Positions 6,919 to 38,645 of a DNA stretch of 39,999 nucleotides are shown in pieces (position 1 is the first letter of the stretch; the number at the start of each line of letters is the position of its first letter). Both the position numbers and the translations under genes were made by a program. Origin of the DNA: Macrostomum lignano. Its lineage: Eukaryota. The stretch lies in the NCBI GenBank assembly GCA_002269645.1, contig NIVC01004637.1, positions 1 to 39,999 of the forward strand, read 5' to 3'. Below the pieces are notes generated by a model. That model was not told the DNA's origin. It did not search any database and saw only the letters and a program-made list of their open reading frames with translations.

Positions 6919-7247
6919 TCTGTCTTCGTCTGTTTGATTAGACTTCAGGTTTCTATATTATTGCCTATATTTTAGAGAAGGGGACAGAATATAGAATTTT
7001 GCACCCAGTTTATAATTGTGTCTCTGTCTCTCTGTGGGGCTCTGGGGGCTTCCCCTACTTTTCCTCTCCTCTCCTTTACCCCTTTCTCTCCCTGTCTCTC
7101 TCTCCCTCCCTCTCTCACCCTCTCACAGTCTTCCTCTCAGTCTCACTCACTTTATCTCCTCCTCTCCGTCTCTCCCTCATCCCTATCTCTCTCTCCCTCT
7201 GTATGTGTCTCTGTCTCTTCTCTCTGTCCCCTCTCTTTTCTCTCTCC

Positions 7248-7289
<42 letters not shown>

Positions 7290-7328
7290 TGTATGTGTCT
7301 CTGTCTCTTCTCTCTGTCCCCTCTCTTT

Positions 7329-7419
<91 letters not shown>

Positions 7420-7490
7420 ATCCCTCATCCTCTCTCTCCCTCTGTGTGTCTGTCTCTCTCTTCCCACCTCTCTCTCTCTTTCTCTCTGTT
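6881..7490. repeat. (CT)n microsatellites and CT-rich low-complexity tract with an internal duplication
   Basis: (CT)n at ~6881-6915 and ~7330-7415. The block CTCTGTATGTGTCTCTGTCTCTTCTCTCTGTCCCCTCTCTTTTCTCTCTCC occurs twice (~7197 and ~7287). Confidence 0.95.
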
Positions 7491-8179
7491 ATCTTGCCTA
7501 TGAGATACATTGTGATGGTGGGTAGGAGGGTATGCTGTGCTATGTGGCGCCACTCTGTCTGTAACGATGAGACTTTATCGGTACACCCACATTCCGGCTG
7601 GCCATGAATATGGAACTGAGTGTTCGCAAAAAGGCCCTCAAACCCCCACTACCCCTATCTTTTACATTTCTAAGTTTGAAAATCGGAAATGAAGAGCGTG
7701 GGAAAATTACTTGAATTGGCTTAGAATGTTAAGATTTAGTATATTTGGATTGCTCTTTGTTTGCCGGGGCTTCAGCCATAGAATTCTAGATAACTAACTG
7801 GAAGCGAAGGCTTTTTTGGGGGGCGGACACAACCGGGCCGAGTGGGAGCCTGCATGTTTTCTGGCTGCCTTATTCAACACTAATGTTTTCACTAATAATT
7901 GGCTGCTGTTATTAAGAGTAACATTTAATTCTTTAAGTTTATTTTTTTAATTAACAAGTCAGTGCTTATTAAGAGTCACTAAAGGTATTTGTGACATATC
8001 TTAACAAAACTAATATTTTTGCAAAGCCGCAAAGTAAACACATAGGATCAGTAAAAAATCATAGTATGAACATAAATTAGCTGCTTAATCTAATCTATGA
8101 AGAAGATGCATCGCGGTACCATCGCCACTGCATCGCGGTACTTTCCGGCGATCGATTTCACCTGATGCATCGCGGTCAA

Positions 8180-9010
8180 ACTCGACGATTTCGTCGAGTC
8201 TCTTCCTGCCGACCGTCGAACGCGCCCAGCGCCAGCTGGACCAGCTTGTGAGCGTTGCTGCAAGCGTCGGCCTGGGGGTCAACACGCAGAAGACCGTCGT
8301 GCTTCGAATACCGAGACGCTGACAGGCAGGTGTCGAAGCTTCCGCACTGTCAGCAGTTCGTCTGCCTCGGCGGTCTGCAGACCATGGTGCTTGATGTTCC
8401 AGAGGACCTAGCACGTCGCCGTGGACTTGCTTGGGTTGCCTTCCGTTTCGTGAGGGCTGTCCTGCAGTCCGAGGCCCTGCCTGACGGCCAGAGGGCGGCG
8501 TTGTTCAAGGCGGTGATCGAGACCGTCCTGTTGTACAACACCGAGACCTGGACACTGACGGATTCGCTCGAACAGCAGGTCAATGCGGCGCACGCTGGCC
8601 TGTCTTTAAGATCGGCTGCGAGCACGTCACCAATGCGGGCTCTATCGCCGCACTGGCCTGTCCCTTCCCAGCAAACTTTTGCGCCGTCCACGACTCCAGC
8701 TGGCAGGCCACATCATCCGAGCCGAGTCCTAAAGTCCACAGCCGGTGCAGGAAGTGCTGCTGCTGTCGCTGCAGGCACCCTACCGGCGGGGACAGGCGCG
8801 CAGTCTGTGTTTCGTCGACTTGCCGGCTAATGCCGGCGCCCCGGACTCTGCCGGCGGTGCGGCCGGCGGTTCGCGCCCAGGCCCTGAAACGTGTGACGTT
8901 GTCCTTGTCTCTCATGACCATGACTCGCTGGAATGGCTGACAGCGCATTTTGTTGTTGTATGGAGGGCACACCGGCACACCATCATTCCTTATTCAGAGT
9001 GTCGCTGTTT
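8180..9010 (+). mobile_element. Decayed non-LTR retrotransposon fragment (RTE-like RT C-terminal region), 5'-truncated
   Basis: ALFKAVIETVLLYNTETWTLTDSLEQQVNAAH matches the LLY(G)xETWTL motif found downstream of LINE RT domains. The region is frameshifted. Confidence 0.7.
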
Positions 9011-9997: not shown

Positions 9998-10924
9998 CTC
10001 CGCCTTCGAGTATCTGGAAAGCTGATTAGGCTAGAGATCCGATTCTTTCTGCAAAAGACACCGACTGGGGTGCTCTAATTATCTGTAGAGTCTCATATCT
10101 GAATCTACAGATACAGCTTGGCAGTTGCTGATTGATTTTTTTGGCTTTCCCTATTAAAATACATTAGAATTTCTAGGAATCTCCGCTTTTGAATATCTGG
10201 AAAGCTGATTAGGCTAGAGATCCGATTCTTTCTGCAAAAGACACCGACTGGGGTGCTCTAATTATCTGTAGAGTCTCATATCTGAATCTACAGATACAGC
10301 TTGGCAGTTGCTGATTGATTTTTTTGGCTTTCCCTATTAAAATACATTAGAATTTCTAGGAATCTCCGCTTTTGAATATCTGGAAAGCTGATTAGGCTAG
10401 AGATCCGATTCTTTCTGCAAAAGACACCGACTGGGGTGCTCTAATTATCTGTAGAGTCTCATATCTGAATCTACAGATACAGCTTGGCAGTTGCTGATTG
10501 ATTTTTTTGGCTTTCCCTATTAAAATACATTAGAATTTCTAGGAATCTCCGCTTTTGAATATCTGGAAAGCTGATTAGGCTAGAGATCCGATTCCTTCTG
10601 CAAAAGACACCGACTGGGGTGCTCTAATTATCTGTAGAGTCTCATATCTGAATCTACAGATACAGCTTGGCAGTTGCTGATTGATTTTTTTGGCTTTCCC
10701 TATTAAAATACATTAGAATTTCTAGGAATCTCCGCTTTTGAATATCTGGAAAGCTGATTAGGCTAGAGATCCGATTCTTTCTGCAAAAGACACCGACTGG
10801 GGTGCTCTAATTATCTGTAGAGTCTCATATCTGAATCTACAGATACAGCTTGGCAGTTGCTGATTGATTTTTTTGGCTTTCCCTATTAAAATACATTAGA
10901 ATTTCTAGGAATCTCCGCTTTTGA
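9998..10924. repeat. Tandem array, five near-identical 183-bp units
   Basis: TATCTGGAAAGCTGATTAGG recurs at 10011, 10194, 10377, 10560 and 10743, an exact 183-bp period. Confidence 0.97.
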
Positions 10925-12556
10925 TCTATGACATCGACAATTAGAGCGCGCCATTGAATTTCTCGTAAAATTGTGATTGAATGCTAATGCAAATAAAGTA
11001 ATTTTAATTCAGCTCATATTTAATTTAAATAACTTAATTTCAAAGCAAACGTTCTTCCTATTTGTCGTGTAATTTGCGGCCGCTTTGAGGCTTTGTCATT
11101 GGAGGATTCATCATGCGGCGGGGATGAGGTGGGGAACAGTTAAGGGGTGTGGGGAACGAATAAAATTAATGAGCTATGTTAGACTGTGTTAGATTTCCCG
11201 CGGGGGATCTAATCAGACCAATAAGTCGACATCACAGACCAATGAGTGTTCTGTAAATCTAAAAGATTGCTTGCTTCTTCCCGTGGCCCCAAGTGTTACT
11301 TGCATACATTCGTATTGGTGCAGTGAAGTAAAGGTCTTACAAAGCTGTTTGCTCATAGAGTAGTGTCCTATGCCCTACTTATAGTAGGCACAAGACAACA
11401 CGTTTAAACTTCGGAAGACTAATAATGCATTATAATGTACAACAAAATTCCAAGTCTGATTTTTACACGATGAAGAAGTCGATATTTCAACACCCTTGAT
11501 TAAACCAGGACTCAAATTTCCCTATTTGCATCCCAGCTGCATAGCAACATATTTTCCCTTGGATACCATTGTTTCTATCACCTCAGCTGTTCCCATTAAG
11601 GATTATGATGTCCCAGATTGCACATTAAAGCGAACTGACTACATTTTAAGCAAAGAAACGTATTCGTTATGCCATAATCGGCAAAATGCAATCAATAGAT
11701 TTATCCATGACAAAGATCAATATCCTTAGTCAAGCATTTGATTAACGAGTTCAAAATTTTAACAGCAGACAAGACGTTAAATTTCTATGCAACACTTTAA
11801 AATTTGCACTTTAAACAGCCAGTGCAGAAATAGTCGTATACAAGAAAAAATAATTTGTTACTATGCGGTTGGACTGCTAGGGTAACAAATTCACAAGGAG
11901 TCTGTTCGCCTGCAAGCCAAAATTAAATAAGGTTGGGGACTTTAGAGGTTTAATTTGGCCTAGACCGTTGTATTAAGAAGATACCTATTAGTAGGTAAAA
12001 CATCATGAAATGAAATGACATAAAATGACCATTTATCTAAAAAGTACCGATTCCAAAGCTCTATAAGTCTTTGAAGGCGACTCAAGTTACGCTTTTATAA
12101 GCCATATAAAATTTATTTGCCTGAGAAAGGCTAATGCGCAGTTCATACTACTGAGTAGTATTCTGCATACATGTGGGTCGCCAATTAGGCTAACAGTCGA
12201 GTGCTTGGCGACCCGGAGGTTAGCCGACCCATTTTAGTACGCGGGCGCGACCAGGCGCATAACCTCTGATCAAGCGACCCTTTGGCGACCATGTCAAATT
12301 ATTGATATTTCACTTCCTTAACCCCGAACTAACCTCAAACAGCCCGTTTTGAGTCATTTGGAGTACATTAGTAGCAGAAAAAAAATTCGACCCGAAATAC
12401 GACGGACAGCCGTCGCAACTCCGTCGCCGCGACCATTTTTTTTCCCATCGGGCAATTCTTTTAGTTTAGGTTTTAGTTTATTTTAGGTTGCGATTTTCGT
12501 AAAGGAATGATATATAAATCGACGAGTTGCCACCCCCATCCACAACAATCGACAAG

Positions 12557-13809: not shown

Positions 13810-14310
13810 GAACCCAGATGTGTGGCATGTCCACCACCTGAGAACCCAATTAAATAATGTCCCTCAACTGAGAACCCAATTAAATAATGTCCCTCACCTG
13901 AGAACCCAATTCAATAATGTCCCTAACCTGTAAACCCAATTCAATAATGTCCCTCACCTGTGAACCCAATTCAATAATGTCTCTCACCTGTGAACCCAAT
14001 TCAATAATGTCCCTCACCTGGGAACCCAATTCAATAATGTCCCTCACCTGTGAACCCAATTCAATAATGCCCACCACCTGAGAACCCAATTCAATAATGC
14101 CCACCACCTGAGAACCCAATTCAATAATGTCCCTTACCTGAGAACTCAATTCAATAATGTCCACCACCTGAGAACCCAATTCAATAATGCCCACCACCTG
14201 AGAACCCAATTCAATAATGCCCACCACCTGAGAACCCAATTCAATAATGCCCACCACCTGAGAACCCAGTTCAATAATGTCCACCACCTGTAAACCCCAT
14301 GATGTCAATC
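13810..14310. repeat. Minisatellite, 30-bp unit, about 16 copies
   Basis: Tandem TGAGAACCCAATTCAATAATG(T/C)CC(CT/AC)CACC. Confidence 0.95.
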
Positions 14311-15602: not shown

Positions 15603-15756
15603 TGTGGTGAGGTGTGGTGTATTATATGCTGAGGTGTTCGTGTGTGGCCAAGCAATCTAAAGTTTCTCTAGGCGGTCGCGTGTATTATAAAGAGTTAAAT
15701 ACTCTATGGTACAAACATAGAGAAATGAAAATGAACAGTCAGTCTGGGGATACCAC
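15603..15756 (-). repeat. 3' LTR of the Gypsy element (left boundary approximate)
   Basis: Homologous to 18750-18874 (GGTGTTCGTG..GGCCAAGCAATCT.AAGTTTCTCT.GGCGGTCGCGTGTATT). The purine tract GGTGGAGGGA (15757-15766, minus strand) directly precedes TGTGGTATCC. Confidence 0.85.
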
Positions 15757-18734
15757 ATCCCTCCACCTTTAGTAAAATCAGTCCATTGTAGGAAAACGAA
15801 TTGGCCTCCTCAGTACAGTCTGGTCGGAGTCCACTTCTGCGCATTGTTCTTGGATCGCTCTGTGGTATTTCGGATGCGTCCCTCTTTTCTCGCTGACTGT
15901 CGCTCATTCCTCCTCCACCAGAAAACGTTACCAGAGCCTCGTCAGATTTTGAGTCTGGGAATATCTTTCTGGCCTTGTTAACGTGGCGCTTCTTGATTGT
16001 GCCACTTTTGTTCTCCAGGATCAGCAGTCCTCCGACTCGCTTCCTTACATAGTATTGCTCTGTACCAAAAAAGCTGTCGTGCTTGTTTCTTGCTTCCCTT
16101 TCAATCACTACTGAGTCACCTGTTTTGATGTCGCAGTCACGAGCGTTCCGATTAGCATAGTTGGACATTTTTCTTTTGTAGTCGGCGCCTTTATCTTTCT
16201 GCTTCACCAAAGGATACATTGTCTGGTCGTTCATTTGAGGAAGTTTTGTCCTGTTGCTCTCATTGGCGCTGTTCTGCAGGCGTGCAAGAAGATTTGCAAC
16301 TCCTGTTCAAAACTTGATCCGTTCAAAATTCTGGACCTTCTGATGACTTTGTTCAATGTTTCATTGAATCTTTCCACCTCCCCATTTGTTGCTGGGTGAC
16401 GCGGAATCCGCGAGTGAATGACGCCTTGACTGTTAAGGTATTCGTCAACGACTTTCGAACAGAAATTTGTTCCGTTGTCTGAGACGATTTCTTTCATTGG
16501 TCCAAATAGTGAAATCACTTTCTTTAGAATTCGCACTACGTCGCTCGATTCAGTGCGCTTCATGATGAACACTAGAGGAAATCTCGAGTGGTAGTCGTTT
16601 GGTTTTTTCACCGGCTGTCTGGACAAAATATCTGCCTCGTTGGTGTCGCCTGGTTCATATTTTATGTTAAAGTTGAATGGTTGCAATCTCATTGCCCAAC
16701 GCTCAACTCTTGGTGGTGGTTTTGAGTTTGATGCAAAACACCCGAGTAGAGGTTTATGATCCGTTATCACCGTGAATTCGGCTGCTCCTTTGAGAAAGTG
16801 AGAAAATTTCTCGCATCACCATTTTATTGCCAATGCTTCTCGCTCGATTTGACTGTATCGAGTCTCCACGTCTGTGAGATTTCTACTGGCATAGCAAACT
16901 GGCTGCAGATTTCCATCTTTCTGCCGCTGAACCAAGATCGCACCAAGACCGACAGGACTAGCATCTACTCGCAGCTGTGTTTCTCGCCCTGTTCCAAAGT
17001 ACGCGAGCGTTTCCGTTGAGCTGATCGCTGCTTTGATGCTGTTGAAAGAAGTTTCTTGTTCTGGGCCCCATTCCCAGGTCTTTCCTTTCTTTGTGAGGTC
17101 ATTCAAAGGCTTCGACAAGGTTGCTAGGTTTGGTACGAATCGAGCAACGAATTGTGCTAGACCAAGGAACGATTCAACTTCACTTGGATTGCAAGGTGGT
17201 TTGAACATTTGAATAGCTTCAGTTCTATTCTCTTGGATGGTTATTCCCTTCTCGGTCAGAATAAATCCCATAAAAGTGGCTTTACTCATTCCAAATTTGC
17301 ATTTTTCCTTTCCAACGGTCATGCCGTTCTCCACGAGCCTTGCTAAGACCTGCTTTGGCCTGTTGCTGTGCTCCTTGACGTCCTGTCCATACACAATTAT
17401 ATCATCCTGAATATTTAGCAGTCCTTGTAAACCAGCCAAAACTTTTGTTATGTAGGCTTGGAGATACTCGTAGAATGACGAGTTGACCCAACCCATCGGC
17501 AATCGTTTGTACCTGTATAGCGGTTGTCCAGGGATTCCTGTTGAGAACTTTGTCAGATGTCTCTAGATTCACTGTCCAGTTCAATTTGATGGAACATTTT
17601 CTTGCCATCAATGTAGCTAAAGCAGCTTGCTTCTCCCATATTTGTGAGCTGATCATCCAGAGATGGGATAGGAAATTGTAGCTTTTCCGTTGCCTCGTTG
17701 AGTTTCTTAAGTCAACGGTCAGTCGTACCTTACTAGTCTTTCCTTTTCTGATTCCTGTGATCAAACTTGCTGAGGATCTGGAGTCAATGAGCACTGTACT
17801 CTCAATACCATTGATCTTCACTTTGGTTCTTGTGCCTGCTGAGTCCTTCGATTCAGTCATAGCGACAGTGTTGATTTCTTCGCCATTCGATTCGTCGTTG
17901 CCACTTTGCTGTTCCGGTTGCTCAAACATCTGGATATTTCTGGTGTTTATTCTGTTCCCTGTCTTTAGATTTAGTCTCCATGCTTGCATTCCATGTCACG
18001 AGCGAAGCAATCCCAAGGACGGTGGCCTGTCCTGTTGCATCTGTAGCAGACTCGATCGCACTTGTTGGTGTTTGGAGTTGATGTCCGCTTGCCAGTCTGT
18101 TTGAACTGTAGATTGCTAGTTGGTCTGTTGTTTATTTTGCTGACTGTGTTGCGCGCCTCATTGGTTGGTTTTTCAATGTCTTTAGCCTGCTTTCTTCAAG
18201 GTGAGGTCAGAGCTTTCCTTTAGCAGCAAAGTCCTTAGCGGCTTTGACGTGCTCTTTAGGACTATCAGATCGCGTAGCAGACGATCCTCGAAGCTGAGCT
18301 TTATTGTGTTCTCTCATTTCCTTCAGGCTTGTACTCGACGTGTAAGTTGCAGTACTTTGCTGCACTTTTTAGACGACTGTAGAAGGTATTAAACGGTTCT
18401 CCCTCTATCTGGCTGACTGACAGCAGCTTGTAAGTCTCATGGACGCTGTTGGTTGCACCTTGGAATAGAGCTGAGCGCTTCCTTCGTTGCTTCGTAGCCT
18501 TGTTCATAGTTTACAGTTTGCAACAACTTTCAGATTTTCGGCCCTGCTAAAAGCAATAATGTGGCTTGCTTCTTTTCGTCAGCTATTCCTTGCACTTCCA
18601 TGAACAGCTCGACTTCCTGCACATAGTCGTTCCACTTATCTGAATGTTGAGCGGATCTTCGTCTGGATCGAAATGCCCAATGCTGTATAACTGTGTATAA
18701 CATTCTCTAGTTGCGAGCGTAGCTTTTCTCTTTT

Positions 18735-20273: not shown

Positions 20274-21211
20274 TATGGAATTCCTTCTAAAAATGCACCT
20301 GCGTCAATTGACAAAGAAGTATCACTACTAAGACTGGCAGCAATCAATGGAAATGTGCTAAAACTTGAACAGCTTCTGCAAAGAGGCGCTGATCCCGACT
20401 CCAAGGATGCAACTGGTCGGTCAGCGATTCACTGGGCTTCCGAACGCGGCCAGGAAGGAGCCGTAAGACTACTCATTAATTGGATGGCGCAGGTCGATTT
20501 GCAAGACAATGACGGACAAAGCCCTCTACACCTGGCCGCTTGGCACGACCATTCAATTATCGTGGAGCTGCTGACGGAAGCTCATGCTGATGTCAATATT
20601 AAGCGAACTTTTGGTGCATCCGCATTGCACATCGCGGCTGGGAAAGGCTTTGAGAAGGTAGTAAAATTGTTGCTTTCATCGAGGGCGGACAGCAACTCAA
20701 AAAGAGTTGATCATGTGACGCCCCTGCTTCTGGCAGCTCAGAAAGGATATACAATCTTGCTACGGGCCATGCTTTCGAAAGCGAATGCTGATCCTAATTT
20801 ATCAGATAATCGAGGAGTGACACCTCTTTGCGCAGCAGCTTACAGCGGCTCTTCAGACTCCATAGCTGAGCTAGTTCTCGCTGGCGCCGACCCGAAAGCA
20901 CTTCTTCACGCGAGAAAGAGTCAGTGTTGCATGCTGCTGCATGCGCCGGCAGAGAAGAAGTCATCCAGCAGTTGCTTAAAGAAGGATGCGATCCAAGTAT
21001 CAAGAATAGAGCTGGATTAACGGCTGCTGTAATGGCGTGCGTATTAGGTCAATGTGAAACTCTGGTTCAACTGATGCGACACAGCTCAACTGTCAATCAG
21101 CTACCGGATTACAGCAGTCTTGATTCTGTGGTGGCATTGCGTCAACTGCTTGATGATCAATCATCAAAGATTGATACTCAGGCTAGCTCGATTACGGATC
21201 CAGCAACAAAG
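20274..21211 (+). CDS. Ankyrin-repeat N-terminal exon of an ANK + Mab-21 gene (frameshifts near 20290 and 20920)
   Basis: Successive ankyrin repeats: GRSAIHWAS, GQSPLHLAA, GASALHIAA, HVTPLLLAA, GVTPLCAAA, MLHAAAC, GLTAAVMAC. Donor AAA|GTAAGT near 21212. Confidence 0.88.
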
Positions 21212-21349: not shown

Positions 21350-23214
21350 GGTTTTATTCAAGAAAGAGCCAAGATACAAAGTGCATTAGCCGAAGTCACA
21401 CAGTCCATAGTGAGAAGCAGACTAGACTTTGGCGAGTTTGTTGAGCACGACATTCACTTTGTTGGCAGCTTTCCCGAGGGCTGGTCAAGCAGTCTGGTGC
21501 GATTGGACGGCCGGACAGACCATGGCTGGACATTGATGTCACTTTATTGACAGAAACCGCGTAATTCACTTTGAGGAGACTTGCGAATGTGACAAAAGTT
21601 TGGGAATTTATGCCATTGAAGTCCAAAACGGACACGTCTACTGCCCAAACACAGGTGAGGCAAAAAAGATTGTTTCAATCGGGCAAAAAGTAACAATTTA
21701 CAGCAAACACGTCTTTTGATTAGCAAAAATTGACACTTCAATTTGGTCCAATTTCCTTTTCAGCTGAAAACCCGCCCAATCCTGGTTTGGAATGGACTGG
21801 AAACCAGCAGTGGATCTCGTGTGGGCTGTTCGCTCCTGCAGTTACCCTCCAATCGAGTTACTTCAACAGCCACTGTATGAGAAGAGCAACATCGACCCAG
21901 CTGTGCTGCAAGACTTGAAGAGCACTCTGTCGCAACCGGAATTTCCGTGTCATTTAGTGACGGCTGCCTCTCCGGGATTGGAGGGCCATCAGTTGCGAGT
22001 GAGCACCATATTTCTGGAGCGAAAACTGTTCAGAAGCCTTAATGACATTCAAGGTCAGGTGTTTGTGCTAATAAAGTTCATAGTGAAGAAGTGATCTCAC
22101 CACAAGTTCAAGGGTTGAAAACTTATCACGCTAAGAATCTCTTATTTTATCTGCTGGATGAAACACCAGCAAAAGACTGGAAGCCTGAAAGTTTGATTTA
22201 CCTAACGAGAATCGCCTTACGAAAGCTACACAGCTGCTTAGTCTGCAACTCAAATGATGAAAATAAACTGATGAATCACTTTTTTCTACGGAATGCCTGT
22301 CTGTATCTCAAGAAAGGACACAGTGGGAAGAAACGCATCGCTACTGTCGTTAATAAAGTCATTAGTGATCTTCATAACGTTATTCTCGAATTCAAGGCCA
22401 ATTTGCGGCCAGTCAGGCCAGACGGCTCTTTCCACTTTCATCCGTTCCTTATGCAGCCAGTGATGAAAGCAAGGAGCACGGAAATCCACTGGGACAACAT
22501 CCAGTACGAAGATCTTTATGACGCAGTGCGAAGTTTGCTATTGAGATTGGGCAAGAATGACTGTACTAGCGACCATGAGCTGCAGTCGTTGCTGAAAGAC
22601 GCATCGAGGATTCCCGACTATGCATTTTCTGCCCGACAGTGTCTGATAGTCATGTCTTATATGAAGTTCGGCAAGCTTGATGAGGCTCTCCACGTATTAA
22701 GTACCGGTGCATCGAAAGCACTTCTTCGTAAAGGAATTCGATTAGAGTTTAAAGCAGCAGACCAACAGATTATACAGAAGTAGTTTGGAAGCAAATAAAA
22801 CATTGCGACTCAGCTTGGAAGTTTTGTTTTGAGCATGACACGCAGCTGGCCTTAAATTTCCTGCCGCAGAGTCTGATCGAGCTCTTCCCTGTAACATGTC
22901 TGTACATAAATTGGTACTATATAAATTTTGATGCTTTCTGGAAGTCTCTGGAACTAGCAATGAATGCATTAGTTAGTTTCATTGAGTCAAGCGCTTGGTT
23001 TGAAGAAATCCTAGAAACTGATACCTCCGACGTGCAGGACTTGCTAACAGCGCTGGAGTTTTGCTCAGACGAACAACTGCTGGTGAGACTGATTCACAAA
23101 AACAAAAAGTGCGTTTTGACGCACAGACGACTGCGAACGAAAATAAGCCAGCTGGTTAGATTAAAAGTAAGTTGCCCGTCTAGTAATAGAATGTTTCTTA
23201 ATATTCTTCATTGA
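21350..23214 (+). CDS. Mab-21/cGAS-like receptor (cGLR) nucleotidyltransferase domain plus helical C-terminus; several frameshifts/stops (pseudogene or assembly error)
   Basis: FVGSFPEGW (21464) ... DID (21529-21537, next frame) ... PAVDLVWAV ... LRVSTIFLERKLFRSL...QVFVLIKFI ... GLKTYHAKNLLFY ... W...L...L..CL...MNHFF. A probable intron lies at ~21655-21763. Confidence 0.8.
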
Positions 23215-23971: not shown

Positions 23972-24012
23972 ATTTCAAAGCTCTCTATTTAATCCTATAT
24001 ATTGACAGCGCT
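23972..24012 (+). repeat. Left arm of a 41-bp inverted repeat (partner 33497-33537)
   Basis: ATTTCAAAGCTCTCTATTTAATCCTATATATTGACAGCGCT versus the reverse complement of 33497-33537; 39/41 identical. Confidence 0.9.
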
Positions 24013-24496
24013 GCCATAGTTTAAATCGATGTTTGAATATACGGTGCTCGTACATTTTATTGATACTTGATGATTGACAGTTTAGCTCAGAAATATTTCG
24101 CCAGCTTCTTTAGTAAGGGCTCTTATAAACAATTTAGCTTGGCTTTTACTTTTGGTTTGGTTTGGTCTCCCGTTGTGAGAGTTCCACTTTTTATCTATAT
24201 ATTGTTTTGTATTATGCACAGCGGTGTGTTTGGTGGTGTGATTCGCGCTTTTCCCGATCTTTCCACCGTAGCTAGAGTTTGAGTAATGACCGGTTTGCCT
24301 AGCCGGCTTGTACGGCGTGGGCTAACCGGCGTTTGCGATTGGCTAGGAGGGGTTGTTTGGCTCCACCCGTGGGGGGTGGGTTTGCGGCGTTGGGGTGGGT
24401 GGTCGTATTCTGTGCCTTTTAGGCCTCGCTTTGAGCTGAGATCGCTTGTTCTCGCGGCGTTGAATTTCTTGTTCTCGCGGCTACCCCTGAATAGCA

Positions 24497-25571
24497 ATGG
24501 CTGACTCAAACCACAGAGTGCATATGCCCGAGACTGTGAAAGGCCTGAAGCCGCGCTTAGACAGGCAGGCCTCTCTGCAAACGGCTGTAAGGAAGTACTC
24601 AGGGAGCGCTTGGCTGCTCATCACGAAGCAACGCAACTGGAACTCAATGCCCCGACTGATCCACGGCAAAAAGAACTAGACACGGACAACACTTCCAGAA
24701 GCAGTCAAAGCAGCGGACGTGGAGCTGCGGCCTTTGAGCCTCAAGGCGGCTGGAGCGGCGGCAGGGGCCCGACTGGCGCTGTGGGAGGCGACCTGGACAA
24801 GGAGCTGGAGCTCGCGGAGAAGAGGGTGCGCCTCCTGACTCTGCGCAAGCAAGAAACCGCTCTAGAAGCTGACGCTCGCGATTTACGGAGACGCAATGAT
24901 CCCCCCGGTGAGATGTCGTGCCTTTCTGAGAGGGTTTTGAATGAGGGCCCCAACCTTGAGTCAGAAGGGACAGTTGCCGGAGGGGCGTACAGGCCGGTGG
25001 AACACCTAAGTAGCCGTAAGCAGAAGGATGCCGGGTTGGCCACCACAGTCGATAAATCGGGCCACGTGAGTATGAGTCAAAGTCAGCGGCTGTTGAGTCG
25101 ATGTCATTCGGTGACTGGATTACTGGAAACGCGAACGCGCTGATTCACATGTTGCATGACAGCAAGCTGGTGCGTCTTTCCGAGACGGGAACCGTGGATG
25201 TTTCGGAGCTGGTTGAGTATCTTCGCATTAATGCTCGGGTTGGCGAATTGTTCGATCTTGGCTTTGATCGGCCGAAGGTGATGCGGTTCGATGACGAGTG
25301 TCGCACGCAGAAGCAGCAGAATCAGAGTTGGAATCAGCCAGCATCTGACCTTGGGCTTGTGGCAGCGTACCTGATGGCGCCAGGCAAATCGGATCAGGCG
25401 AACGCTCGTGCAACTCGAAAAGGAGGCCAGGGAATCTGTTTTGACTTCAACCGGGCTGGTGGCTGCTCCAGAGCTCAGTGCCGATTTGCTCACCGATGCC
25501 GCCGGTGCGGCCAGAGCCACTCCGAAGCCTCCTTCCACCGCGAAGGGGATCCGGAGTTTCCACGCCAATGA
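24497..25571 (+). pseudogene. Ngaro ORF1 (gag-like), frameshifted
   Basis: N-terminal coiled coil (LELAEKRVRLLTLRKQETALE) and C-terminal CFDFNRAGGCSRAQCRFAHRCRRCGQSH, the CCCH/CCHC finger typical of Ngaro ORF1. Confidence 0.75.
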
Positions 25572-25703
25572 CTCGAGGACTCAGGGGCACGGGAACATCA
25601 GGAGTCGCCCCCGTATCCCCTTAGTGAATCAGCTGTTCAGAGCGACTCCCACACCAAAAATGCTATCTCAACTCTAGAAAATCTCGTCAATACCGATAGT
25701 TTT

Positions 25704-27227
25704 ATGAAAAATCTTTGCTTATCGAGTGACATGCATCTTGAAGCCTGGAAAGAAGAATTGGAAGAAATTGATATCTCCAAAGATGAAGCCAGTTTTATAA
25801 TTTCTGGTGTAACTCATGGATTCCGCATTACTAACAAGATATGCAGTGATCCCCAGCCAAACATCGAACTGGAAAACTATTATTCCTTGAACATCAACAT
25901 TAACATGCATTATTCCGATGCACAGATCCAGAAAGAAGTTCTGCGCGGTCGGTATCGCCGCTGCCCGATGGCATCAAGCCAGATTGTCAGTGCCTTGGGG
26001 CCATTCCTAAGCCTGGATCCGCCTCAGTGCGACTCATTTACGATTGCAGCCGGCCTGAGGGACTCGCGGTTAACGACTACTACTCAATGCCTTCAAAATT
26101 CCGTCTGACATCCGCTACGAACTTCAGCAGGACTGCGTCCCGGCTCTTACATGTGTAAAGTTGACCTTAGCCAAGCCTACCGTTCGTGCGGGATCCACCC
26201 TGATGATCAGATGCTAGCCGGAATTAAGTACTTGCCTCCTGGTAGCCGCGAGCCAGTCTACCTCATAGACACCAGGCTTCCATTCGGAGCAGCGGCTTCC
26301 GTCTACTGTTTTCAAAAGCTGAGCTCTGCCATCAGACTCATGATGATCAAACGCGGTTTCAATAACACGGAGGCCTATATTGATTATTTAGCCTTCTGCG
26401 GTTCCTTGACTGAATGCAGGGACTTCTATTTGGAGCTCAAGAGTCTCGTTGTGCGCCTCGGATTTGAGATCAACGAAGAGAAATGTGTGCCACCGACTCA
26501 GTGCATGGTTTTCTTGGGAATCAGATTCGAATCTGTGGCTGGAACGATGTCGCTACCGCCCGAAAAGTTGGAAGAGCTGCAGCTGCTGCTGAAAGACTGC
26601 CTGGCGAAGCCGAGGCTTTCCAAGTGGATTCTGCGGAGGGTGATTGGCAAACTGAACTGGGCTGCGCAGGTTGTACCTCACGGGAGGCCTTTCCTGAGGG
26701 ACCTCATCGACGCTGCCGATTCACTGAAAAGCCCGAGTCATCGAGTCAAGATGAACACTCCACTGCACAGCTGCTTACTCTGGTGGCGCCTTGCGCTGGA
26801 AAGCCGTCGATCTAGACCGACCTGGCAGCCAAACAAGCCCTGCCTCGCCATGGAGACAGATGCTTGCGGTCCAGGCGGTGCTGCTATTCTCCAAGATTCG
26901 AATGGTTGCCGGGACTGGCTCTACTTCAGCTGGTCAGCTGATGCTGAGGCCGAGTACGAAAATCTTCCTATTAATTACAAGGAGGCTGTGACCGTCCTTC
27001 TCGCGATCATCTGCTGGGGTAGCCAGCTTTTTGGCTATCGTATTGGCGTTTTCTGCGACAACGGCAATAAAGGTTCGTCTAGAGAACCCATCATTCTCCG
27101 GCTGCTGCAACAGCTGGCTCTGCTCTGTGTTCAAAATGAACTCGATCTGAAGGTGCTGCACGTCCGGGAAATTTTCAGTTGTTGGCCGATCCGGGTTCCC
27201 GGTTGCATAGCCGCAGTCAGCTGGTAA
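25704..27227 (+). pseudogene. Ngaro RT-RNase H
   Basis: KVDLSQAYR, DTRLPFG, YIDY (YxDD with D>Y), FLGI, IGKLNWAA, TDACGPGGAA, INYKEA, FCDN. Confidence 0.88.
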
Positions 27228-27329
27228 ATTTTCTGTGTCGGGTTATGGGACTCTCGATGTTGATGATGAAGAGTTCAGCAGCCACTGCCTCTGCCCCGCC
27301 ACCCGTCGCTTTCTCAATTTTCAGGTCGC

Positions 27330-28300
27330 CTCCCTCCTGCAGCCGCCAGCCACGTCGGGCCCCAAGCCCGCCGCCTGCTGAGTCTCGCCTACGCTAGCAG
27401 CTCAAGGCGGTCACTGTCATCCGCCGTCGCCTCCTGGCTGCGGCATTGCCGGGCTGTCGGCACCGATCCGGTCAACTCTACCGTCGCCACGTTACTCAAC
27501 TACCTGGCGGAGCTGTGCTTCACTCGTCTTTGGTCGCCCAGTAGCCTCCGAGTACATCTCAGCGCAATCTCTGCTTTTCTAAGATCCGCCAGCGCGGTCG
27601 ACATCACGAAGCATCCCCTGTGCTCCTCCTTGTTCGAGGCTCCAGGCGCGCCCTCAGCGGCACCCCACGGCGAGCTCAGGCCCTCTCACCTGACGACCTG
27701 CTTCGCATTCGTCGCACCATTCACGATAGCGACCCACGAGGCGTTGCATGCTGGGCGGCAATCCTGTGCGGCTGGTGGGCGATGTTGCGCAAATCCAGCC
27801 TGTTCCCCGAGTCAGCAGGAGTGCAAGCGCTCCAGCGAAGGGACCTGAGAGCAGTGCCATCCGGCCTGGTTCTGAGCCTGAGGCACAGTAAAACCAACCA
27901 GTTCGGAGCCCGGGTGCACCGCGTGCTGCTGCCGAAACTGTCCGGTGGCCACCCACTCTGCCCGACTGAAGCCATGATGCGGCACCTACGTGTCAATGGC
28001 ATCTCGGCTCCGTCCACCCCGCTCTTCTCAGCGTCAAGCGGCTCAAAGCGGGTCAATCTGTCAGCTTCCTATTTCGTGCGCTTTCTCCGAAATTCCCTGC
28101 GCTGCGCTGGACTTCAGGGCCAGGGTGTGCTGTACTCTGCGCACAGTCTGCGGCGGGGCGGCGCTACGTGGTGCCTTCGAGCTGAGCTGGCAGAGGATGA
28201 GATCAAGGCTGTCGGTGACTGGCGCAGCGACGCGCGACTGGTGCACGACCTGAGAGTGACTTATCCTTCCGAGCTGCCAAGAAGATGGCTCAGGCGGTGC
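27330..28300 (+). pseudogene. Ngaro tyrosine recombinase
   Basis: SAM-like N-terminus (TLLNYLAEL...SLRVHLSAIS), then MLRKSSL, HSKTNQ, AHSLRRGGAT and GDWRSDARLVH, with His where the catalytic Tyr is expected. Confidence 0.88.
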
Positions 28301-29223
28301 AGCGGCTTTGCTAACTCAGCCATTCATGGTTTTTGTGCGTGTTGTTAACTTCTTTTTTCTTCGTCGGTTCCTTTGCTTTTACTGTCCTTGCTTGCCTTTG
28401 TAATGTTTTATTTCCTGTTGTTATGCTCGTAATCTTCGTGTTCGGTGTTTTTTCGCTTTGTACTCGTTTTCTTTCGTGTCCTTTCGTCTTTGTGTTTTGG
28501 CATTGGGCTCAATTGTGCCACCTGTGTTCTCACCAAGCGCCTTTCGTTGTCTCCCTTTCTGCCATAGAGCTAAAGATAGTAATCGCAGTTTTCACGATTG
28601 TTTAAAAGCAAATACGTGCTCTGAGTATGCTCAAGATTGCGCTATGCTCAGTGGATAAATAATCAGCGGTCCCAGTGCGTGACAACGATTGTCTGGCGAG
28701 CGCCGGTAGGCGCGAGCCATAGACAAATCGTTGTCACGTGCTGCGACCGCTGATTCTTTGCATTGTTTTTCTGTTTGACGATCCTACAGACAATGCATTG
28801 TTTGTAGTAATGGATTGTTCTGCATTAAAAATGTGAATAATGATTGTCAAATTGCTAAACAATGAAAGTGATAGGTGGTTCATGGTGGAAGATACCTATC
28901 TAAGCAAATTTGTTGCACCAAACTTATGATTGCGCCATTATTGTAAAGAATCGTGTCAAGCAGTTCCAAATATGTAAAATTATAAACTTTAATTAGTCAC
29001 CATAGTGGAGTCAAGATTGCGACCAATGAAATTTCATCTTCTCTTTGAATTATTGACGACTGACTTCATCCCCATTTTTGAGCATATTTTCTTGCATCTT
29101 TCTTGCATATTTAATCTATTTCTCGAATTTATATTTCGCATCATTCCTTCAATTCTTATTTAATTCAATTCAATTCAATTCCAATAGATAAAACATTTAT
29201 TGAAAAATTGTTGCAGTGGGAGA

Positions 29224-30801
29224 AATGGACAAAGTCGTCCATTCAGCAGCCCGCCAGCACCCAGCAGCCCGCAGCAGCACCCAGCAGCCAAAGAAAACGC
29301 GGGCCGCCAGGCAAGAATACATTTGCCCGTTCGGCAGCTGCATGCCAATTAAAGAATCCAGATTCAGCGAACACATCAAAAGGGCGCACTCAGCTGTTCA
29401 AGAAAGCACGAAAGAAAAGCTAGCAGCAACTGCACAGTAAATGCACAGTAACCAGCAGATGCTCTGCAGAGAAAAGCTCTGCAAGCGCTGCGAGCTGCAG
29501 TTGAGCTGCATACGCACCAAAGAACTGCTGGCCCGATGCCCGAGACGGCACTACAGTGTGCAGTCTGCGGCGAATGGAAGAACAACGCGAATCAGCTTAG
29601 CAGCCACAAGCGAAACAGCCACCCTAGCGTAGTCCGAGCCGAGAAAGAGCAGAAACTGATCGAAGCCAGGGCCAAAGTGCCAGCCAGAGCAGCAGTGGCT
29701 GAGCACCCATCGACAGTTGACGTGGAAGCACTTTGCGTCTTCCTGGCCAGCTCTCTCGGCGGACGGAAAAAGCCGGCTACGTTCCGCGAGATCCGCTGCT
29801 ACCTCAAACGGCTAATGCAGCGTCTAGACATTACGAGCTTCAATCAGCTGATCAGCGAAGATCTGCGCGATAAAATTAGCGAGTACCTGAACAGTTTGTC
29901 CTACTCGATTCTAAAACAAATGGTGTCCGCACTTGAGAAATTCGGTAATTTTTCAATTACCCGCCGTTTCCAGCAGATCGTAGACGGTGGGATGCACCAA
30001 CAGCTGACCTCGTACAGGCAGTCCACAAAATATTGGACTGCAAGTTCAATGGGGTCGAAGGCTGAATATTACGCGAAGCTTGTTGACCGCCGAGAGGAAG
30101 AATTGCTCACAGGCGAGCAGATTGCAGCAGTCTTTCAGATGAAAGACGCTGTGCTGGCAGAAGCGCGATCAACCAAGGACAGGTGAGTTAAATTTTTCCC
30201 AATGCTTTTTATGCCGAGGTATAAAAGTTTGATGGGGCTTAATATGACACTGGAATTCAAAATAGCACTGGTATTCAGAATGGCACTGCAAATTTTATTA
30301 GCTCAGAAATTACAGAAATCTGAGACAGCTCAGAAAATTACCTCTAAATAAATAAATACCTCTAATTCCATCCGCACAGGACGGTGACATACCTGGCCGT
30401 TGGCATGGTTATCTGTTTTGGTGATGGAAATGCCAACCGGCAAGGCGTAGCCTCTACCTGCCTAATCTCTGACGCCCGGCTCAAGGTGGCTCAAAGCACC
30501 TAACGAGCCGTTAAAGGTGCAAAGTCACAAGTCCAACGCCAAGCATGGGTCGGCCTGGGCCAGCGCTTGCGCTGAGCGTCCAAAGGACGATGACCTGGCG
30601 CTCGTATTTCCTTACGGGTCCTTTGATAGACTGTTCTATCAATATCGAGAAAGGTATTCTCCACTGCTCAAGAACGTTACCGTTTCAAATTTTCGGCAAT
30701 GGTTGGAAGTCATGGGCCTGTCGAACTGCTCTGCGGAGGAACAGCGGCTCATGGCTGACCACCAGAATCACAACGAAGGTGTGCAGCGCCAATTTTACCA
30801 G
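29224..30801 (+). CDS. Spliced C2H2 zinc-finger + tyrosine recombinase (Crypton-like) gene; one frameshift near 30490; 3' end unresolved
   Basis: Fingers CPFGSC..RFSEHIKRAH and CAVC..LSSHKRNSH. Phase-2 intron 30183-30379 (AG|GTGAGT..CACAG|G). Catalytic-like series NANRQG, SHKS, VTVSNFRQ, QNHN and QFYQ, followed by a donor at 30802. Confidence 0.72.
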
Positions 30802-32275
30802 GTAAAATTGCTAAATTTGCTAAATAATTGTCACAGAAGACTTCTGAAACTACAAAAATTACATTTTAAGCGTAAAATTGGATGCCTTAGCAACTAAATA
30901 GTCCTGAATAAGAACTAAATTCAATACACTGAATAGCTGCATATAACATAGGTTCAGTCATTAAAGCTGCGCATTTGAGCCCTTGCACCAATGTACGAAT
31001 GTAGTTTACACCATTACGAGTATTATATTGTTGTGTCTCGACCTAATGGCCGCTGGACGGGTCAGGGTTCGGGTCCTCCCGCCTAAGACACCCCGGTCCC
31101 AGCCCTCTACCCCGGCTACTCCTACGCGCCCTTCGCTCGGCTCGGCGAGAGTTCGCCGGACCGACCACCCTGAGATCAGCGAGTGTTTACCGGTCTCAGG
31201 TCCCTACCAGCTCCCGGCCCCACGCGGCAACCCAAAAGACGAAAGCACGTGCTCACCTCTGCGTTTACAGACTTATTCGCGAAGCGTTTATTGGCGAAGC
31301 GTTTATTGGCACGAAGCAGAATAATCAGCGATTGCGGGAGTCGAGTTATTAGCTTGCAGAGAGCAGGTTTGCAGAGTGACGCCGAAGAACGGGATAGAAT
31401 ACAAACAAAAAGAAAGAAACGTGGAGCGCAGCACGCTCAGGGCGGGCCCTTAAATAATATTTACACAAAAAAGGGGGGAGGGGTGGGGCAGAATGGAGAG
31501 GGCGAGCCAAACCCTGGGGCCCAGCCGGCTTCTCAGCCAGCCAAGCCAATACGAGCAGCCCCAGGGTGAGGCGGGCAAAGAGGGAGGGGGTAGGGTCAGC
31601 ACCTAGATTGGACAGAAGTTGCGCCGGGGACTGGGTGCAGAAAGGGCTAGGCCAGGGTTAAGGCTTACGCCTCTCACAAACCCTGGCCCGGGCGCGAGAC
31701 GGGGGACGGGGCGGGGTGGCATGAAAACTGAAAACACAAGCACTGGAAGGGCGCAGCCCAACAATATCGTATTTTTTTTATTAATTTTACTGATCTGACT
31801 CCATCAAACCTGCAATCCCGTCTGAAAATGCAAACAGGGCCAGACCAAGGAGAGGCGAAAGAAAGGACGTGACCTAACGAAGAAGTTGGCGTCGAGTGCG
31901 ACAGCGCTGCAAGAGGACATCCTGAGCGCCAAAGCTCCAATTCAAGGCAGCCGGCTGCAGAGGGCGGCCAACGAACTCGCCGGCGGCATCGATGGCGACA
32001 GTGAGTACAGCATGGTTGCTAGCATTTGAGGGAAATTAGAATTTGCGAATAACCCGTACGATTAAAATGCGCTATAAATGCAAAGAAATTTATTAATTTT
32101 GTCAGAAATGACCAAAAAAATTTACCTTAGCAATAAAAAAGATGGTCAGTTCTAAATTTTTTCTCCTTGTTAAAGGCTTAAAAAACTTGCTTTTCTAATT
32201 AGATTACGAATTCTGCTTAAAAACACTTGCTACTTTCTATCATTAGATTACGACCTGGACAGCATTCTGCATAGG

Positions 32276-33061
32276 ATGGAAAATCTGCCGTCTGCTGACA
32301 TGGACTCCGTGTCGGTTGCGGGCCCATCAGCGACTGCGTCCAGGGCTCCTCCGCCGTGCCGATGGCAAAAACTGCTCCCGTCCTGCTTGCCGCTGGTGGC
32401 GCTGTGCCTGGCGACGCTGTGCCTGGCGCCACCGTGTCTGGCGCCGCTGTGCCTAGCGACACCGTGGCTGGCGCCGTGCTGCTTGACACCGTCCTGTCGG
32501 ACGCCGTCCTGCTCGCCGTTTGACTCGGAGGATCTCAATGGTATAGTAAACCAGCTGTACGGCAACAGCGATAACGACATTGATGGCGCTGTTGTCTCCG
32601 CGTCCGCTGGCGATGGCGTCGCCTCAGCCTCCGCTGCCGATGCCGCCGCTGGCAACGCTTCCGCTGATGTCGCTGTCCACATAGGATCAGGACGTCGCCT
32701 AGCTAGAAAGCGACCGCCAGCTCGAGCTCCAGCCGATAGTGCAGCCAAGCGTCAGAAAATTCAACCTGGATCGCTTGTACTAGGTTACTGGCCAACAGAT
32801 GGAGAAAACTGGTGGCCGGCGATGGTTTGCCTACCCCGGCGCGGAACAAACTGCACCAAGAGCTTCTGCTCGAAGCAAATTCACGTGCAGTTTTTCGATG
32901 AGCCTCCTTCTAGCGCGTGGCTACACCAGTGGCGGTTCGCCAGCGGAGCAGAGGCGGCTCCAAAAAACGCTTCTAAACAGCTCTGCCAAGCTTATCAACG
33001 CATGACAGAAGCCAGCAAATTGTATTCATGCAAAAACTTTAACTGCACTTTTAAAATGTAA
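32276..33061 (+). CDS. PWWP-domain protein with low-complexity N-terminus
   Basis: PGSLVLGYW...NWWPAMVC...IHVQFFDEPPSSAWL...LCQAYQRM matches the PWWP pattern. The upstream part has 15-nt repeats encoding (L/P)CLAP. Confidence 0.75.
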   Translation: MENLPSADMDSVSVAGPSATASRAPPPCRWQKLLPSCLPLVALCLATLCLAPPCLAPLCLATPWLAPCCLTPSCRTPSCSPFDSEDLNGIVNQLYGNSDNDIDGAVVSASAGDGVASASAADAAAGNASADVAVHIGSGRRLARKRPPARAPADSAAKRQKIQPGSLVLGYWPTDGENWWPAMVCLPRRGTNCTKSFCSKQIHVQFFDEPPSSAWLHQWRFASGAEAAPKNASKQLCQAYQRMTEASKLYSCKNFNCTFKM

Positions 33062-33496: not shown

Positions 33497-33537
33497 AGCG
33501 CTGTCAATATATGGGATTAAATGGAGAGCTTTGAAAT
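33497..33537 (-). repeat. Right arm of the 41-bp inverted repeat
   Basis: AGCGCTGTCAATATATGGGATTAAATGGAGAGCTTTGAAAT. Confidence 0.9.
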
Positions 33538-37879: not shown

Positions 37880-38645
37880 GTGAGAAATACATCCTCGACT
37901 GTATCAAACTCCTCAACGTGTTGGGTTCCGCCAACAAAATTACCCTTAAGTGGGTTCCGGGGCATGTGGGGATCCGAGGAAATGAGTTGGCTGACACCCT
38001 TGCAAAAGTTGGTGCCTCCGGCTCCTCTCTCGGCCCCGAACCTCTTGTCCCGATTCCTGGCTGTGTCATCGACTCGCGCATCAAAGCGTGGATCAGGACT
38101 CAGCACCGCTCGACTTGGGCGAACCGCACGAACTGCAGGCAATCCAGAGGCGCTGTCCCTCAGCCCTCTCACCAGCTCCGGAAGCTTCTCTTGCGCCTCT
38201 CGCGCAGAGACATCCGGGCTGCCACCATGACCCTCTCTGGTCACGGCTGCTTCTCCAGGCACCAGTACCTGCAGGGCAACGCCACCAACGCCACCTGCAG
38301 TTTCTGCAACTCAGGTGACGAAACCGCTGAGCATTTCGTCAGCATCTGTCCCGCCTTCACGCGGGCCAGACTCACTTACCTCGGGCCACACACATCTATT
38401 ACTGAAGCGTGCAAACCCGAAAACTTTAATCAGCTCATGCGCTACCTTCGGGCCACCCGCAGGGCTGAACTCTCCTTTCCAGAGAGCACCATAGCTGCTG
38501 GCGACACTGGGGGACCTCCCTGGGCGGCGCCAACCCTCCGTCCATAGCGACGCGTCGGCCGTTCAGGGACTAGCGGAATGGGCGCTCGCGCCTTCCCACT
38601 GTGTCCCCTCCGGGACAGCCCTGCAGCTAAGTCAAAGTAAGTCAA
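37880..38645 (+). mobile_element. 5'-truncated non-LTR retrotransposon 3' end (RNase H + CCHC finger; I/R1/Loa group)
   Basis: ITLKWVPGHVGIRGNELADTLAK (RNase H C-terminus) and LSGHGCFSRH...CSFCNSGDETAEHFVSICPAF. Short AAGTCAA-like tail near 38630. Confidence 0.9.

Follow-up and report, generated by a model that had tools for sequence, protein, structure and literature searches.

Anatomy of the locus

This study concerns a decayed zinc-finger gene on the forward strand of contig NIVC01004637.1 (Macrostomum lignano, GCA_002269645.1), of which we analysed positions 1 to 39,999 as one 40-kb stretch, hereafter the window. The window consists of repeat-rich eukaryotic DNA that carries a Ngaro/DIRS-like element, fragments of Gypsy-like and non-long-terminal-repeat (non-LTR) elements, and open reading frames (ORFs) of the ankyrin, Mab-21 and PWWP types. 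The gene itself, a putative tyrosine recombinase, is a remnant that spans 29225-30897 (+) and forms a GC-richer island between AT-rich spacers. Three-frame translation places its ATG at 29225, followed by a basic stretch, while the strand opposite this interval holds no ORF of note.

A hidden Markov model (HMM) built from eight relatives of the encoded protein, with the window sequence excluded, was run against the six-frame translation of the window and matched four colinear pieces of this interval (Table 1). Nothing else in the 40 kb matches the family HMM, and the scan found no exon downstream of 30801. The agreement goes far beyond chance, and the locus is a real gene remnant. Finger 1 is formed by C29324, C29339, H29372 and H29387 in the pattern C-x4-C-x10-H-x4-H, while in the relatives it reads C-x5-H-x9-H-x3/4-C/H and in two members matches the Pfam CHHC finger zf-U11-48K at 6.5e-5. 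Finger 2 is classical (C29557, C29566, H29605, H29620; C-x2-C-x12-H-x4-H), with all four ligands invariant across the family. It is followed in the window protein by about 190 residues of predicted helices, a modelled bundle that matches the N-terminal domain of the prophage integrase 3lys (template modelling score 0.47, not significant; Foldseek against the PDB) and that appears to resemble an integrase core-binding domain.

The gene is interrupted by an intron that is as AT-rich as its flanks and of which the window contains no further copy. The residues on its two sides, seven and four in number, are exactly the 11 family-HMM positions left unmatched, which identifies the 197 nt as an exactly placed intron instead of a random insertion. 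The catalytic candidates are R 30438, K 30529 (in SHKS), S 30685, R 30694 (in VSNFRQ), H 30769 and Y 30796, with the serine occupying the His-II position and the histidine and tyrosine nine residues apart. An earlier note on this DNA had listed two fingers, a helical middle region, a GT-AG intron and the series R, K, xxxR, H and Y; each of these is present where it had been placed, and the spliced linker of 11 residues bears out the intron as genuine.

The same note held that the catalytic positions are retained and that a single frameshift interrupts the recombinase exon; the retention stands, whereas the damage is heavier than described. The 11-nt tandem duplication (Table 1) places TAA stops in frame, at 29438-29440 and at the copy of this triplet, and leaves fingers 1 and 2 in different frames. 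A second frameshift lies between about 30474 and 30486, the first frame of exon 2 meeting a TAA at 30501, and alignment to the family HMM reveals a deletion of 13 codons after the HKS hairpin. Family homology ends at 30801, where the relatives go on with a C-terminal helix. We considered and rejected the possibility that these lesions are tiny introns, as gaps of 11-33 nt are too short and frameshifts fit better. Of the positions invariant in the family, 29/49 are kept and 20/49 changed, while each relative keeps 82-93% when left out in turn. With two frameshifts, at least one premature stop and the 13-codon deletion, the window copy is a non-functional pseudogene.

A rare family of zinc-finger proteins

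When 1.84 billion representative proteins were scanned in full with HMMER, the eight relatives were retrieved, at E 5e-19 to 7e-8 and 22-30% identity. The only one from an annotated genome is the M. lignano 'hypothetical protein' PAA91811, which is accompanied by two sister entries; each of the others is a single ORF on a short ENA/metagenome or Logan contig, with a G+C content of about 32-33% where measured (L002, L003). A word-indexed protein search gave no match for the spliced window protein and, with the family profile, retrieved P0006 only, and the 2.9 million viral contigs of IMG/VR contained no relative. We found no description in the literature of such an element, nor of Cryptons in M. 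lignano.

The family falls into two clades, both of which are present in each of the samples ERZ23491819 (P0002 and P0008) and ERZ27271215 (P0003 and P0004), and the window copy is closest to the clade of P0001, P0002, P0003 and P0007. Gene structures differ among members. The M. lignano core and four metagenomic genes are intronless, L002 (372-3455) and L008 (1431-3242) have a common intron just before the HKT hairpin, with a second one in L002, and L004 (3-2494; JGI Ga0193947_1003596) consists of about seven colinear pieces separated by about six introns. No relative has an intron at the position seen in the window; introns at such differing positions imply that the family is inherited as DNA and exclude retrocopies. 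The M. lignano protein has long additional N- and C-terminal regions, the former giving a Tudor-like impression that found no support in Pfam.

Catalytic residues and predicted fold

The residues R, K, R, H and Y do not vary among the members that cover them, and the window copy has them too, with Arg-I present in 9/9 sequences. In intact members they are spaced by 29-30 (R-K), 64-68 (K-TxxR), 25 (R-H) and 9 (H-Y) residues, values close to those of XerD, Cre and lambda Int, where the H/W-Y distance is also 9; the K-SxxR spacing of 52 in the window copy is due to its 13-codon deletion. The tyrosine-recombinase catalytic set proposed earlier for the window gene thus recurs throughout the family as R-K-(T/S)xxR-H-Y together with the predicted fold, with Thr/Ser at the His-II position.

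AlphaFold models were obtained for the window protein (predicted local distance difference test, pLDDT, 74), which gave weak matches to lambda integrase in the PDB, and for the M. lignano core (pLDDT 84.4; predicted template modelling score 0.62), in which the order of secondary-structure elements is that of an integrase catalytic domain. When the latter was compared with BFVD by Foldseek, 10 of the top 18 matches were named phage integrases, VLF-1 or a hytrosavirus tyrosine recombinase. Alignments in these 18 extended over 221-398 columns, and over at least 347 for the named recombinases, with a probability of 0.8-1.0 for the best eight; the matches include an uncharacterised Pyramimonas orientalis virus protein, nudivirus VLF-1 and the hytrosavirus recombinase. 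Against the PDB, the top 27 matches of the same model included SSV1 integrase, an integron integrase, variola topoisomerase IB and Cre, and proteins of recombinase fold recur in two independent PDB searches, one with the M. lignano model and one with the window model. On this moderate, though not decisive, support we consider it highly probable that the family has a two-domain recombinase fold, with a helical core-binding and a catalytic domain.

A dispersed element in M. lignano

Each of the three M. lignano entries is on a large contig of its own in GCA_002269645.1, and their surroundings are unrelated: one about 8 kb upstream of a Miff gene, one inside a UQ_con gene and one inside a TRAM_LAG1_CLN8 gene, so that two copies sit within introns of other genes. 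BLASTN delimits a shared segment of 7.5-8.4 kb that is 99.2-99.8% identical (L001 8481-16903, L010 7692-15640, L011 4399-11902), in which length differences reflect only the copy number of an internal tandem repeat of about 444 bp. The similarity stops abruptly at both ends. With the slash marking the junction, the left end reads flank/CCAT(A/C)CTTTCCAAATCGTTACAG... and the right end ...CCTGTAATGGAAAAG(CC)/CCAT flank, and CCAT, CCCAT or GCCCCAT is found at both junctions of each copy as a direct repeat of 4-7 bp. If joined, the ends would read GGAAAAG-CCCCATA-CTTTCC, in which a 7-nt spacer is flanked by short inverted arms, as expected of a recombinase core site. The 235 nt nearest the left end contain five copies of TTACAG(G), and the right end has three of CCTGTAA/CCTGCAA, which are inverted in orientation.

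The element contains one large ORF, the zinc-finger recombinase, and no other enzyme able to move it. Judged from its sequence, it appears to match the operational pattern of Cryptons, and the family has apparently been mobile recently in M. lignano. A large imperfect palindrome lies about 430 nt from the left end (L001 8912-9175).

Surroundings of the window copy

Upstream of the pseudogene lies a Ngaro/DIRS-like retroelement with gag-like, reverse transcriptase/RNase H and recombinase ORFs (Table 1), for which terminal repeats were not found in the window. Its recombinase keeps R, K and HSLRRGGAT and has a histidine where 45 relatives carry the catalytic tyrosine; this substitution justifies its previous description as a dead Ngaro recombinase. 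The reverse transcriptase near the pseudogene is part of this Ngaro-like element, a distinct element that has a very different recombinase of its own. As the relatives of the zinc-finger gene stand alone, with no reverse transcriptase called on their loci, the view that it lacks one of its own is upheld.

Several repeats surround the pseudogene. A 41-nt inverted repeat with two mismatches, of a kind for which none is expected in shuffled sequence, has its arms 9.5 kb apart, with the Ngaro-like element, the pseudogene and the PWWP ORF all lying between them; G+C rises within about 200-450 bp inside each arm. We rejected it as the ends of the element because it shows no target duplication and because an independent Ngaro-like element and what is probably a host PWWP exon also lie inside it; later insertions may have split what was a small inverted-repeat element. 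The second copy of a 14-nt direct repeat begins exactly where family homology ends (after YQ), and this repeat was rejected as Crypton-type flanks, its frequency being at chance level in AT-rich DNA. A hairpin (34-nt arms, 88% complementary, 35-nt loop) stands between the zinc-finger gene and the recombinase ORF of the Ngaro-like element; its likeness to the M. lignano palindrome may be a coincidence. The end motifs TTACAG and CTTTCC of the M. lignano element are absent around the window gene and in the other loci.

Downstream, a GC-rich block (55-60% G+C) lies between AT-rich spacers and includes a 15-nt tandem repeat; its searched part, 31183-31569, holds no Pfam-recognisable ORF. The PWWP ORF, probably a host exon, scores 28.5 bits, above the Pfam cutoff, its closest counterpart in the PDB being the PWWP domain of MSH6 (E 1.4e-6); the coding sequence of its N-terminal half is a 15-nt tandem repeat. 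We rejected this ORF as part of the recombinase gene, as no relative has a PWWP domain nearby. Elsewhere in the window, a set of ORFs resembles, by eye only, Gypsy-type protease, reverse transcriptase, RNase H and integrase, and was grouped with two further intervals as other retroelement fragments (Table 1); one ORF among these fragments combines an RNase H end with a zf-RVT match, the typical tail of a non-LTR element. The ankyrin-repeat and Mab-21 ORFs are possibly exons of one host gene. Three tandem arrays include units of about 183 nt that yield near-identical ORF pieces, a repeat of about 30 nt encoding GSQVVGIIEL units, and a CT-rich microsatellite-like tract.

Table 1. Features of the window. 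HMM positions and matches refer to the family HMM.
Feature	Position	Strand	Remarks
Basic N-terminus and zinc finger 1	29225-29437	+	HMM positions 2-32, match 29204-29437, E 1.8e-6; codons start 29201+3n
Lesion: 11-nt tandem duplication TGCACAGTAAA/TGCACAGTAAC	~29431-29452	+	direct reading; HMM pieces on either side in different frames
Zinc finger 2 and helical domain, end of exon 1	29452-30182	+	HMM positions 28-267, match 29452-30183, E 6e-28
Intron	30183-30379	+	197 nt, phase 2, AG/GTGAGT ... CACAG/G, AT-rich
Exon 2, first part: helix, then GDGNANRQG	30380-30486	+	candidate Arg-I 30438-30440; HMM positions 279-303, match 30366-30500, E 3.7e-4
Rest of catalytic domain, shifted frame	30487-30801	+	HMM positions 308-427, match 30466-30894, E 3.2e-11
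Read-through tail to TAA 30895-30897	30802-30897	+	family homology (C-terminal helix) lost; GT at 30802 a possible splice donor
Ngaro/DIRS-like retroelement	24400-28348	+	
gag-like ORF	25101-25571	+	CCCH knuckle
Reverse transcriptase/RNase H	26151-27227	+	
Ngaro recombinase ORF	27620-28348	+	
41-nt inverted repeat	23972-24012 / 33497-33537		
Hairpin	28657-28690 / 28726-28759		
14-nt direct repeat	28846-28859 / 30802-30815		GTCAAATTGCTAAA / GTAAAATTGCTAAA
GC-rich block	31000-32000		15-nt tandem repeat 31273-31310
PWWP ORF	32276-33061	+	15-nt tandem repeat 32378-32505
Gypsy-type ORFs	15704-17989	-	
Retroelement fragment	37918-38547	+	
Retroelement fragment	8255-8830	+	no Pfam match
Ankyrin-repeat ORF	20355-21020	+	Ank_2, E 6e-42
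Mab-21 C-terminal domain ORF	22091-22783	+	E 1e-7
Tandem array	10108-10983	-	ORF pieces from ~183-nt units at 10108-10806
Tandem array	13880-14308	-	
Tandem array	6999-7607	+	

Discussion

We interpret 29225-30897 (+) as the decayed single gene of a recombinase-only DNA transposon, Crypton-like in organization and of a lineage unlinked by sequence to Crypton A, I, F or S or to DIRS/Ngaro, and we put the probability of this interpretation at roughly two in three. By itself, the window locus is an ordinary dead transposon relic in repeat-rich DNA, and the practical result is modest; this copy may once have moved, as its family suggests.

Crypton DNA transposons reportedly go back to Goodwin and colleagues in 2003. 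They encode a recombinase only, lack classical terminal inverted repeats and are flanked by direct repeats of 4-6 bp that reflect target microhomology (overview in PMC13465315; Kojima and Jurka 2011, PMC3212892). The M. lignano element likewise has a tyrosine recombinase as its sole enzyme and no reverse transcriptase, as judged from the genes called on the relatives' loci; it is bordered by CCAT to GCCCCAT repeats, with neither classical terminal inverted repeats nor true target-site duplications; and introns, which Crypton genes may contain, occur in the window gene and some relatives. It differs from Cryptons in its two N-terminal zinc fingers, in the Thr/Ser at His-II, in the subterminal TTACAG/CCTGTAA arrays in inverted orientation, and in a recombinase that hhalign does not link to Crypton A, I, F or S and in which Pfam finds no DUF3504 or GCR1_C match, either in the window protein or in the family. 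The family is unannotated and, as modelled, structurally a recombinase, and the name Crypton applies to it operationally only. In this operational sense the suggestion of the earlier note that we are dealing with an unclassified Crypton lineage can be kept, whereas as an assignment to one of the clades A, I, F or S it fails (hhalign at most 8%). Similarly, its idea of a mobilising enzyme of a DNA element holds for the family, given the dispersed and more than 99% identical M. lignano element, and not for the window, where the supposedly near-intact enzyme is a pseudogene. The recombinase fold that it expected profile or structure searches to reveal emerged, with moderate support, from Foldseek searches of the AlphaFold model, and did not emerge from the profiles.

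A number of observations weigh against our interpretation. Searches of Pfam (PF00589 included), PHROGs, NCBIfam and PDB sequences gave no recombinase match and only zinc-finger noise. Profiles of Crypton A, I, F and S were built from Additional file 4 of PMC3212892, a supplement the text of which was machine-read with some errors, and hhalign of the family catalytic domain against them gave a probability of only 0.1-7.8% and no clade membership; against a profile of 45 DIRS/Ngaro recombinases it gave 3%. In a control, the DIRS/Ngaro profile found the same Crypton profiles at 97.1-99.5% probability. The best of the family's alignments, to CryptonA+I, is non-significant and nonetheless colinear, pairing R/R, K/K, VTNTsYR/YTNHsxR, H/H and Y/Y. 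The structural matches are marginal in BFVD (best E 2e-3, the three best matches being without a functional name) and not significant in the PDB (all E above 1), and the tyrosine segment is modelled at low confidence (pLDDT about 46). At the His-II position, which is not universally His within the tyrosine recombinase superfamily, the five full-length relatives carry Thr and the window copy carries Ser. Only three M. lignano copies were seen, each metagenomic cluster has one member on one contig, and the family is very rare in public data, unlike a high-copy repeat. Finally, no ends, flanking direct repeats or empty site were found for the window copy, the one broken copy in the 40 kb.

The most credible of the rival explanations, though unlikely in our view, is that the remnant is a host pseudogene from a domesticated recombinase and that the proteins of the family bind or rearrange DNA for the cell. 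It would fit the very low public copy numbers, with clusters of one member on one contig, the co-occurrence of two conserved paralogous clades in the same samples, the approximately six introns of L004, which recall an old resident gene, and the long extra terminal regions of the M. lignano protein. In the Crypton-derived DUF3504 genes (ZMYM2/3/4, QRICH1, KCTD1, KIAA1958 and WOC), too, a eukaryotic protein unites zinc fingers and a recombinase-derived domain. Those genes, however, retain few catalytic residues and are host genes conserved in single copy (PMC3212892), whereas the present family keeps the full R-K-R-H-Y set at 22-45% identity, has a member dispersed in M. lignano at more than 99% identity, at unrelated sites with sharp ends and short direct repeats, lacks a Pfam DUF3504 match and carries fingers that are C2H2/CHHC-like, not MYM-type. 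In addition, its occurrence in one annotated genome among billions of proteins is a patchiness unlike that of a conserved host gene.

It is quite improbable that the family is a zinc-finger DNA-binding protein of another kind, with an unrelated helical and alpha/beta domain, and that the motif and Foldseek matches are coincidental. This would account for the negative outcome of every sequence-profile search and for the PDB Foldseek E values, and the sole near-significant sequence match of the catalytic-domain profile is to RRM1 of the La protein (E 0.002, 21 bits; PDB sequences). We judge the La match to be analogous or due to chance, since it covers just a beta-hairpin/helix segment that also aligns colinearly with Crypton. 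The BFVD matches, by comparison, are mostly integrases aligned over both domains at a probability of 0.8-1.0, recombinase folds recur in two independent PDB searches, five invariant residues stand in integrase-like order and spacing, and the M. lignano element has no other enzyme to move it. The best Foldseek matches, which are phage and archaeal integrases, XerC/D, Cre and VLF-1, share with the family a helical core-binding and a catalytic domain, as predicted, and the superfamily has the same order of R, K, xxR, H and Y with an H-Y distance of 9; the family differs from it in having no detectable sequence similarity, in being encoded by eukaryotic genes with introns, in its N-terminal zinc fingers and in the Thr/Ser at His-II.

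We think it very improbable that the enzyme is the integrase of a virus or virus-like element that became endogenous, such as a giant virus, virophage or polinton-like element, and not that of a small transposon. The best structural matches are viral proteins, but such names are expected because BFVD holds viral proteins only; IMG/VR yielded no relative, the roughly 8 kb of the M. lignano element contain one large ORF and no capsid- or polymerase-sized ORFs, and the family genes carry spliceosomal introns. Least probable of all is that the gene is an accessory of the adjacent Ngaro/DIRS-like retroelement (24.4-28.35 kb), situated between its recombinase gene and its 3' terminal repeats, as the shared strand, the distance of 0.9 kb from the Ngaro recombinase ORF and the open limits of an element whose ends were not found are outweighed by relatives elsewhere that have no reverse transcriptase nearby, by the intron, by an AT-rich gap of background composition between the two, and by the quite different recombinase that the Ngaro element already possesses.

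More generally, DIRS/Ngaro elements resemble the family in being eukaryotic mobile elements that use a tyrosine recombinase, with a similar hairpin lysine motif (HKTxxxYG versus SKTNQFG), and differ from it in that the relatives' loci lack reverse transcriptase and RNase H, that the window gene has an intron and that hhalign finds no link. The two recombinase genes of the window also differ in that the zinc-finger gene keeps the catalytic tyrosine that the Ngaro gene has replaced by histidine.

Taking the recombinase-only transposon as the preferred reading, we can outline how intact members may move. The fingers and helical domain would bind the element ends, in M. lignano TTACAG(G) on the left and CCTGTAA on the right, and the catalytic tyrosine would form a covalent link to DNA, cutting and rejoining it within the short CCAT core. 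The element would excise as a circle with the ends joined as GGAAAAG-CCCCATA-CTTTCC, the predicted circular junction being ...GGAAAAGCCCCATACTTTCC..., and the circle would re-integrate at sites of CCAT microhomology, giving rise to the 4-7 bp direct repeats with neither a true target-site duplication nor an RNA intermediate. The window copy would be capable of none of these steps. A bolder proposal, which we regard as tentative and would not bet on at even odds, is that the family constitutes a superfamily of its own among the eukaryotic DNA transposons with a tyrosine recombinase, new and independent of both Crypton A/I/F/S and DIRS/Ngaro. In this view it may have been acquired separately from a viral or prokaryotic integrase, would recognise element ends or targets through its two N-terminal zinc fingers, would have been recently active in Macrostomum lignano and would escape repeat annotation that relies on Pfam.

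Among eukaryotic DNA transposons, those that tyrosine recombinases mobilise form the rarest and least understood class, and to our knowledge the known diversity of this class rests on recombinases that are all recognisably interrelated. A lineage that has the catalytic set and the fold and yet falls outside every profile library would, if true, widen the class, and would mean that current repeat annotation misses such elements. M. lignano, a flatworm that serves as a laboratory model, offers a concrete experimental system with three near-identical copies, for which the ends are defined and a joined-end site is predicted, and the natural fusion of zinc fingers to a recombinase may provide a possible tool for site-specific genome engineering.

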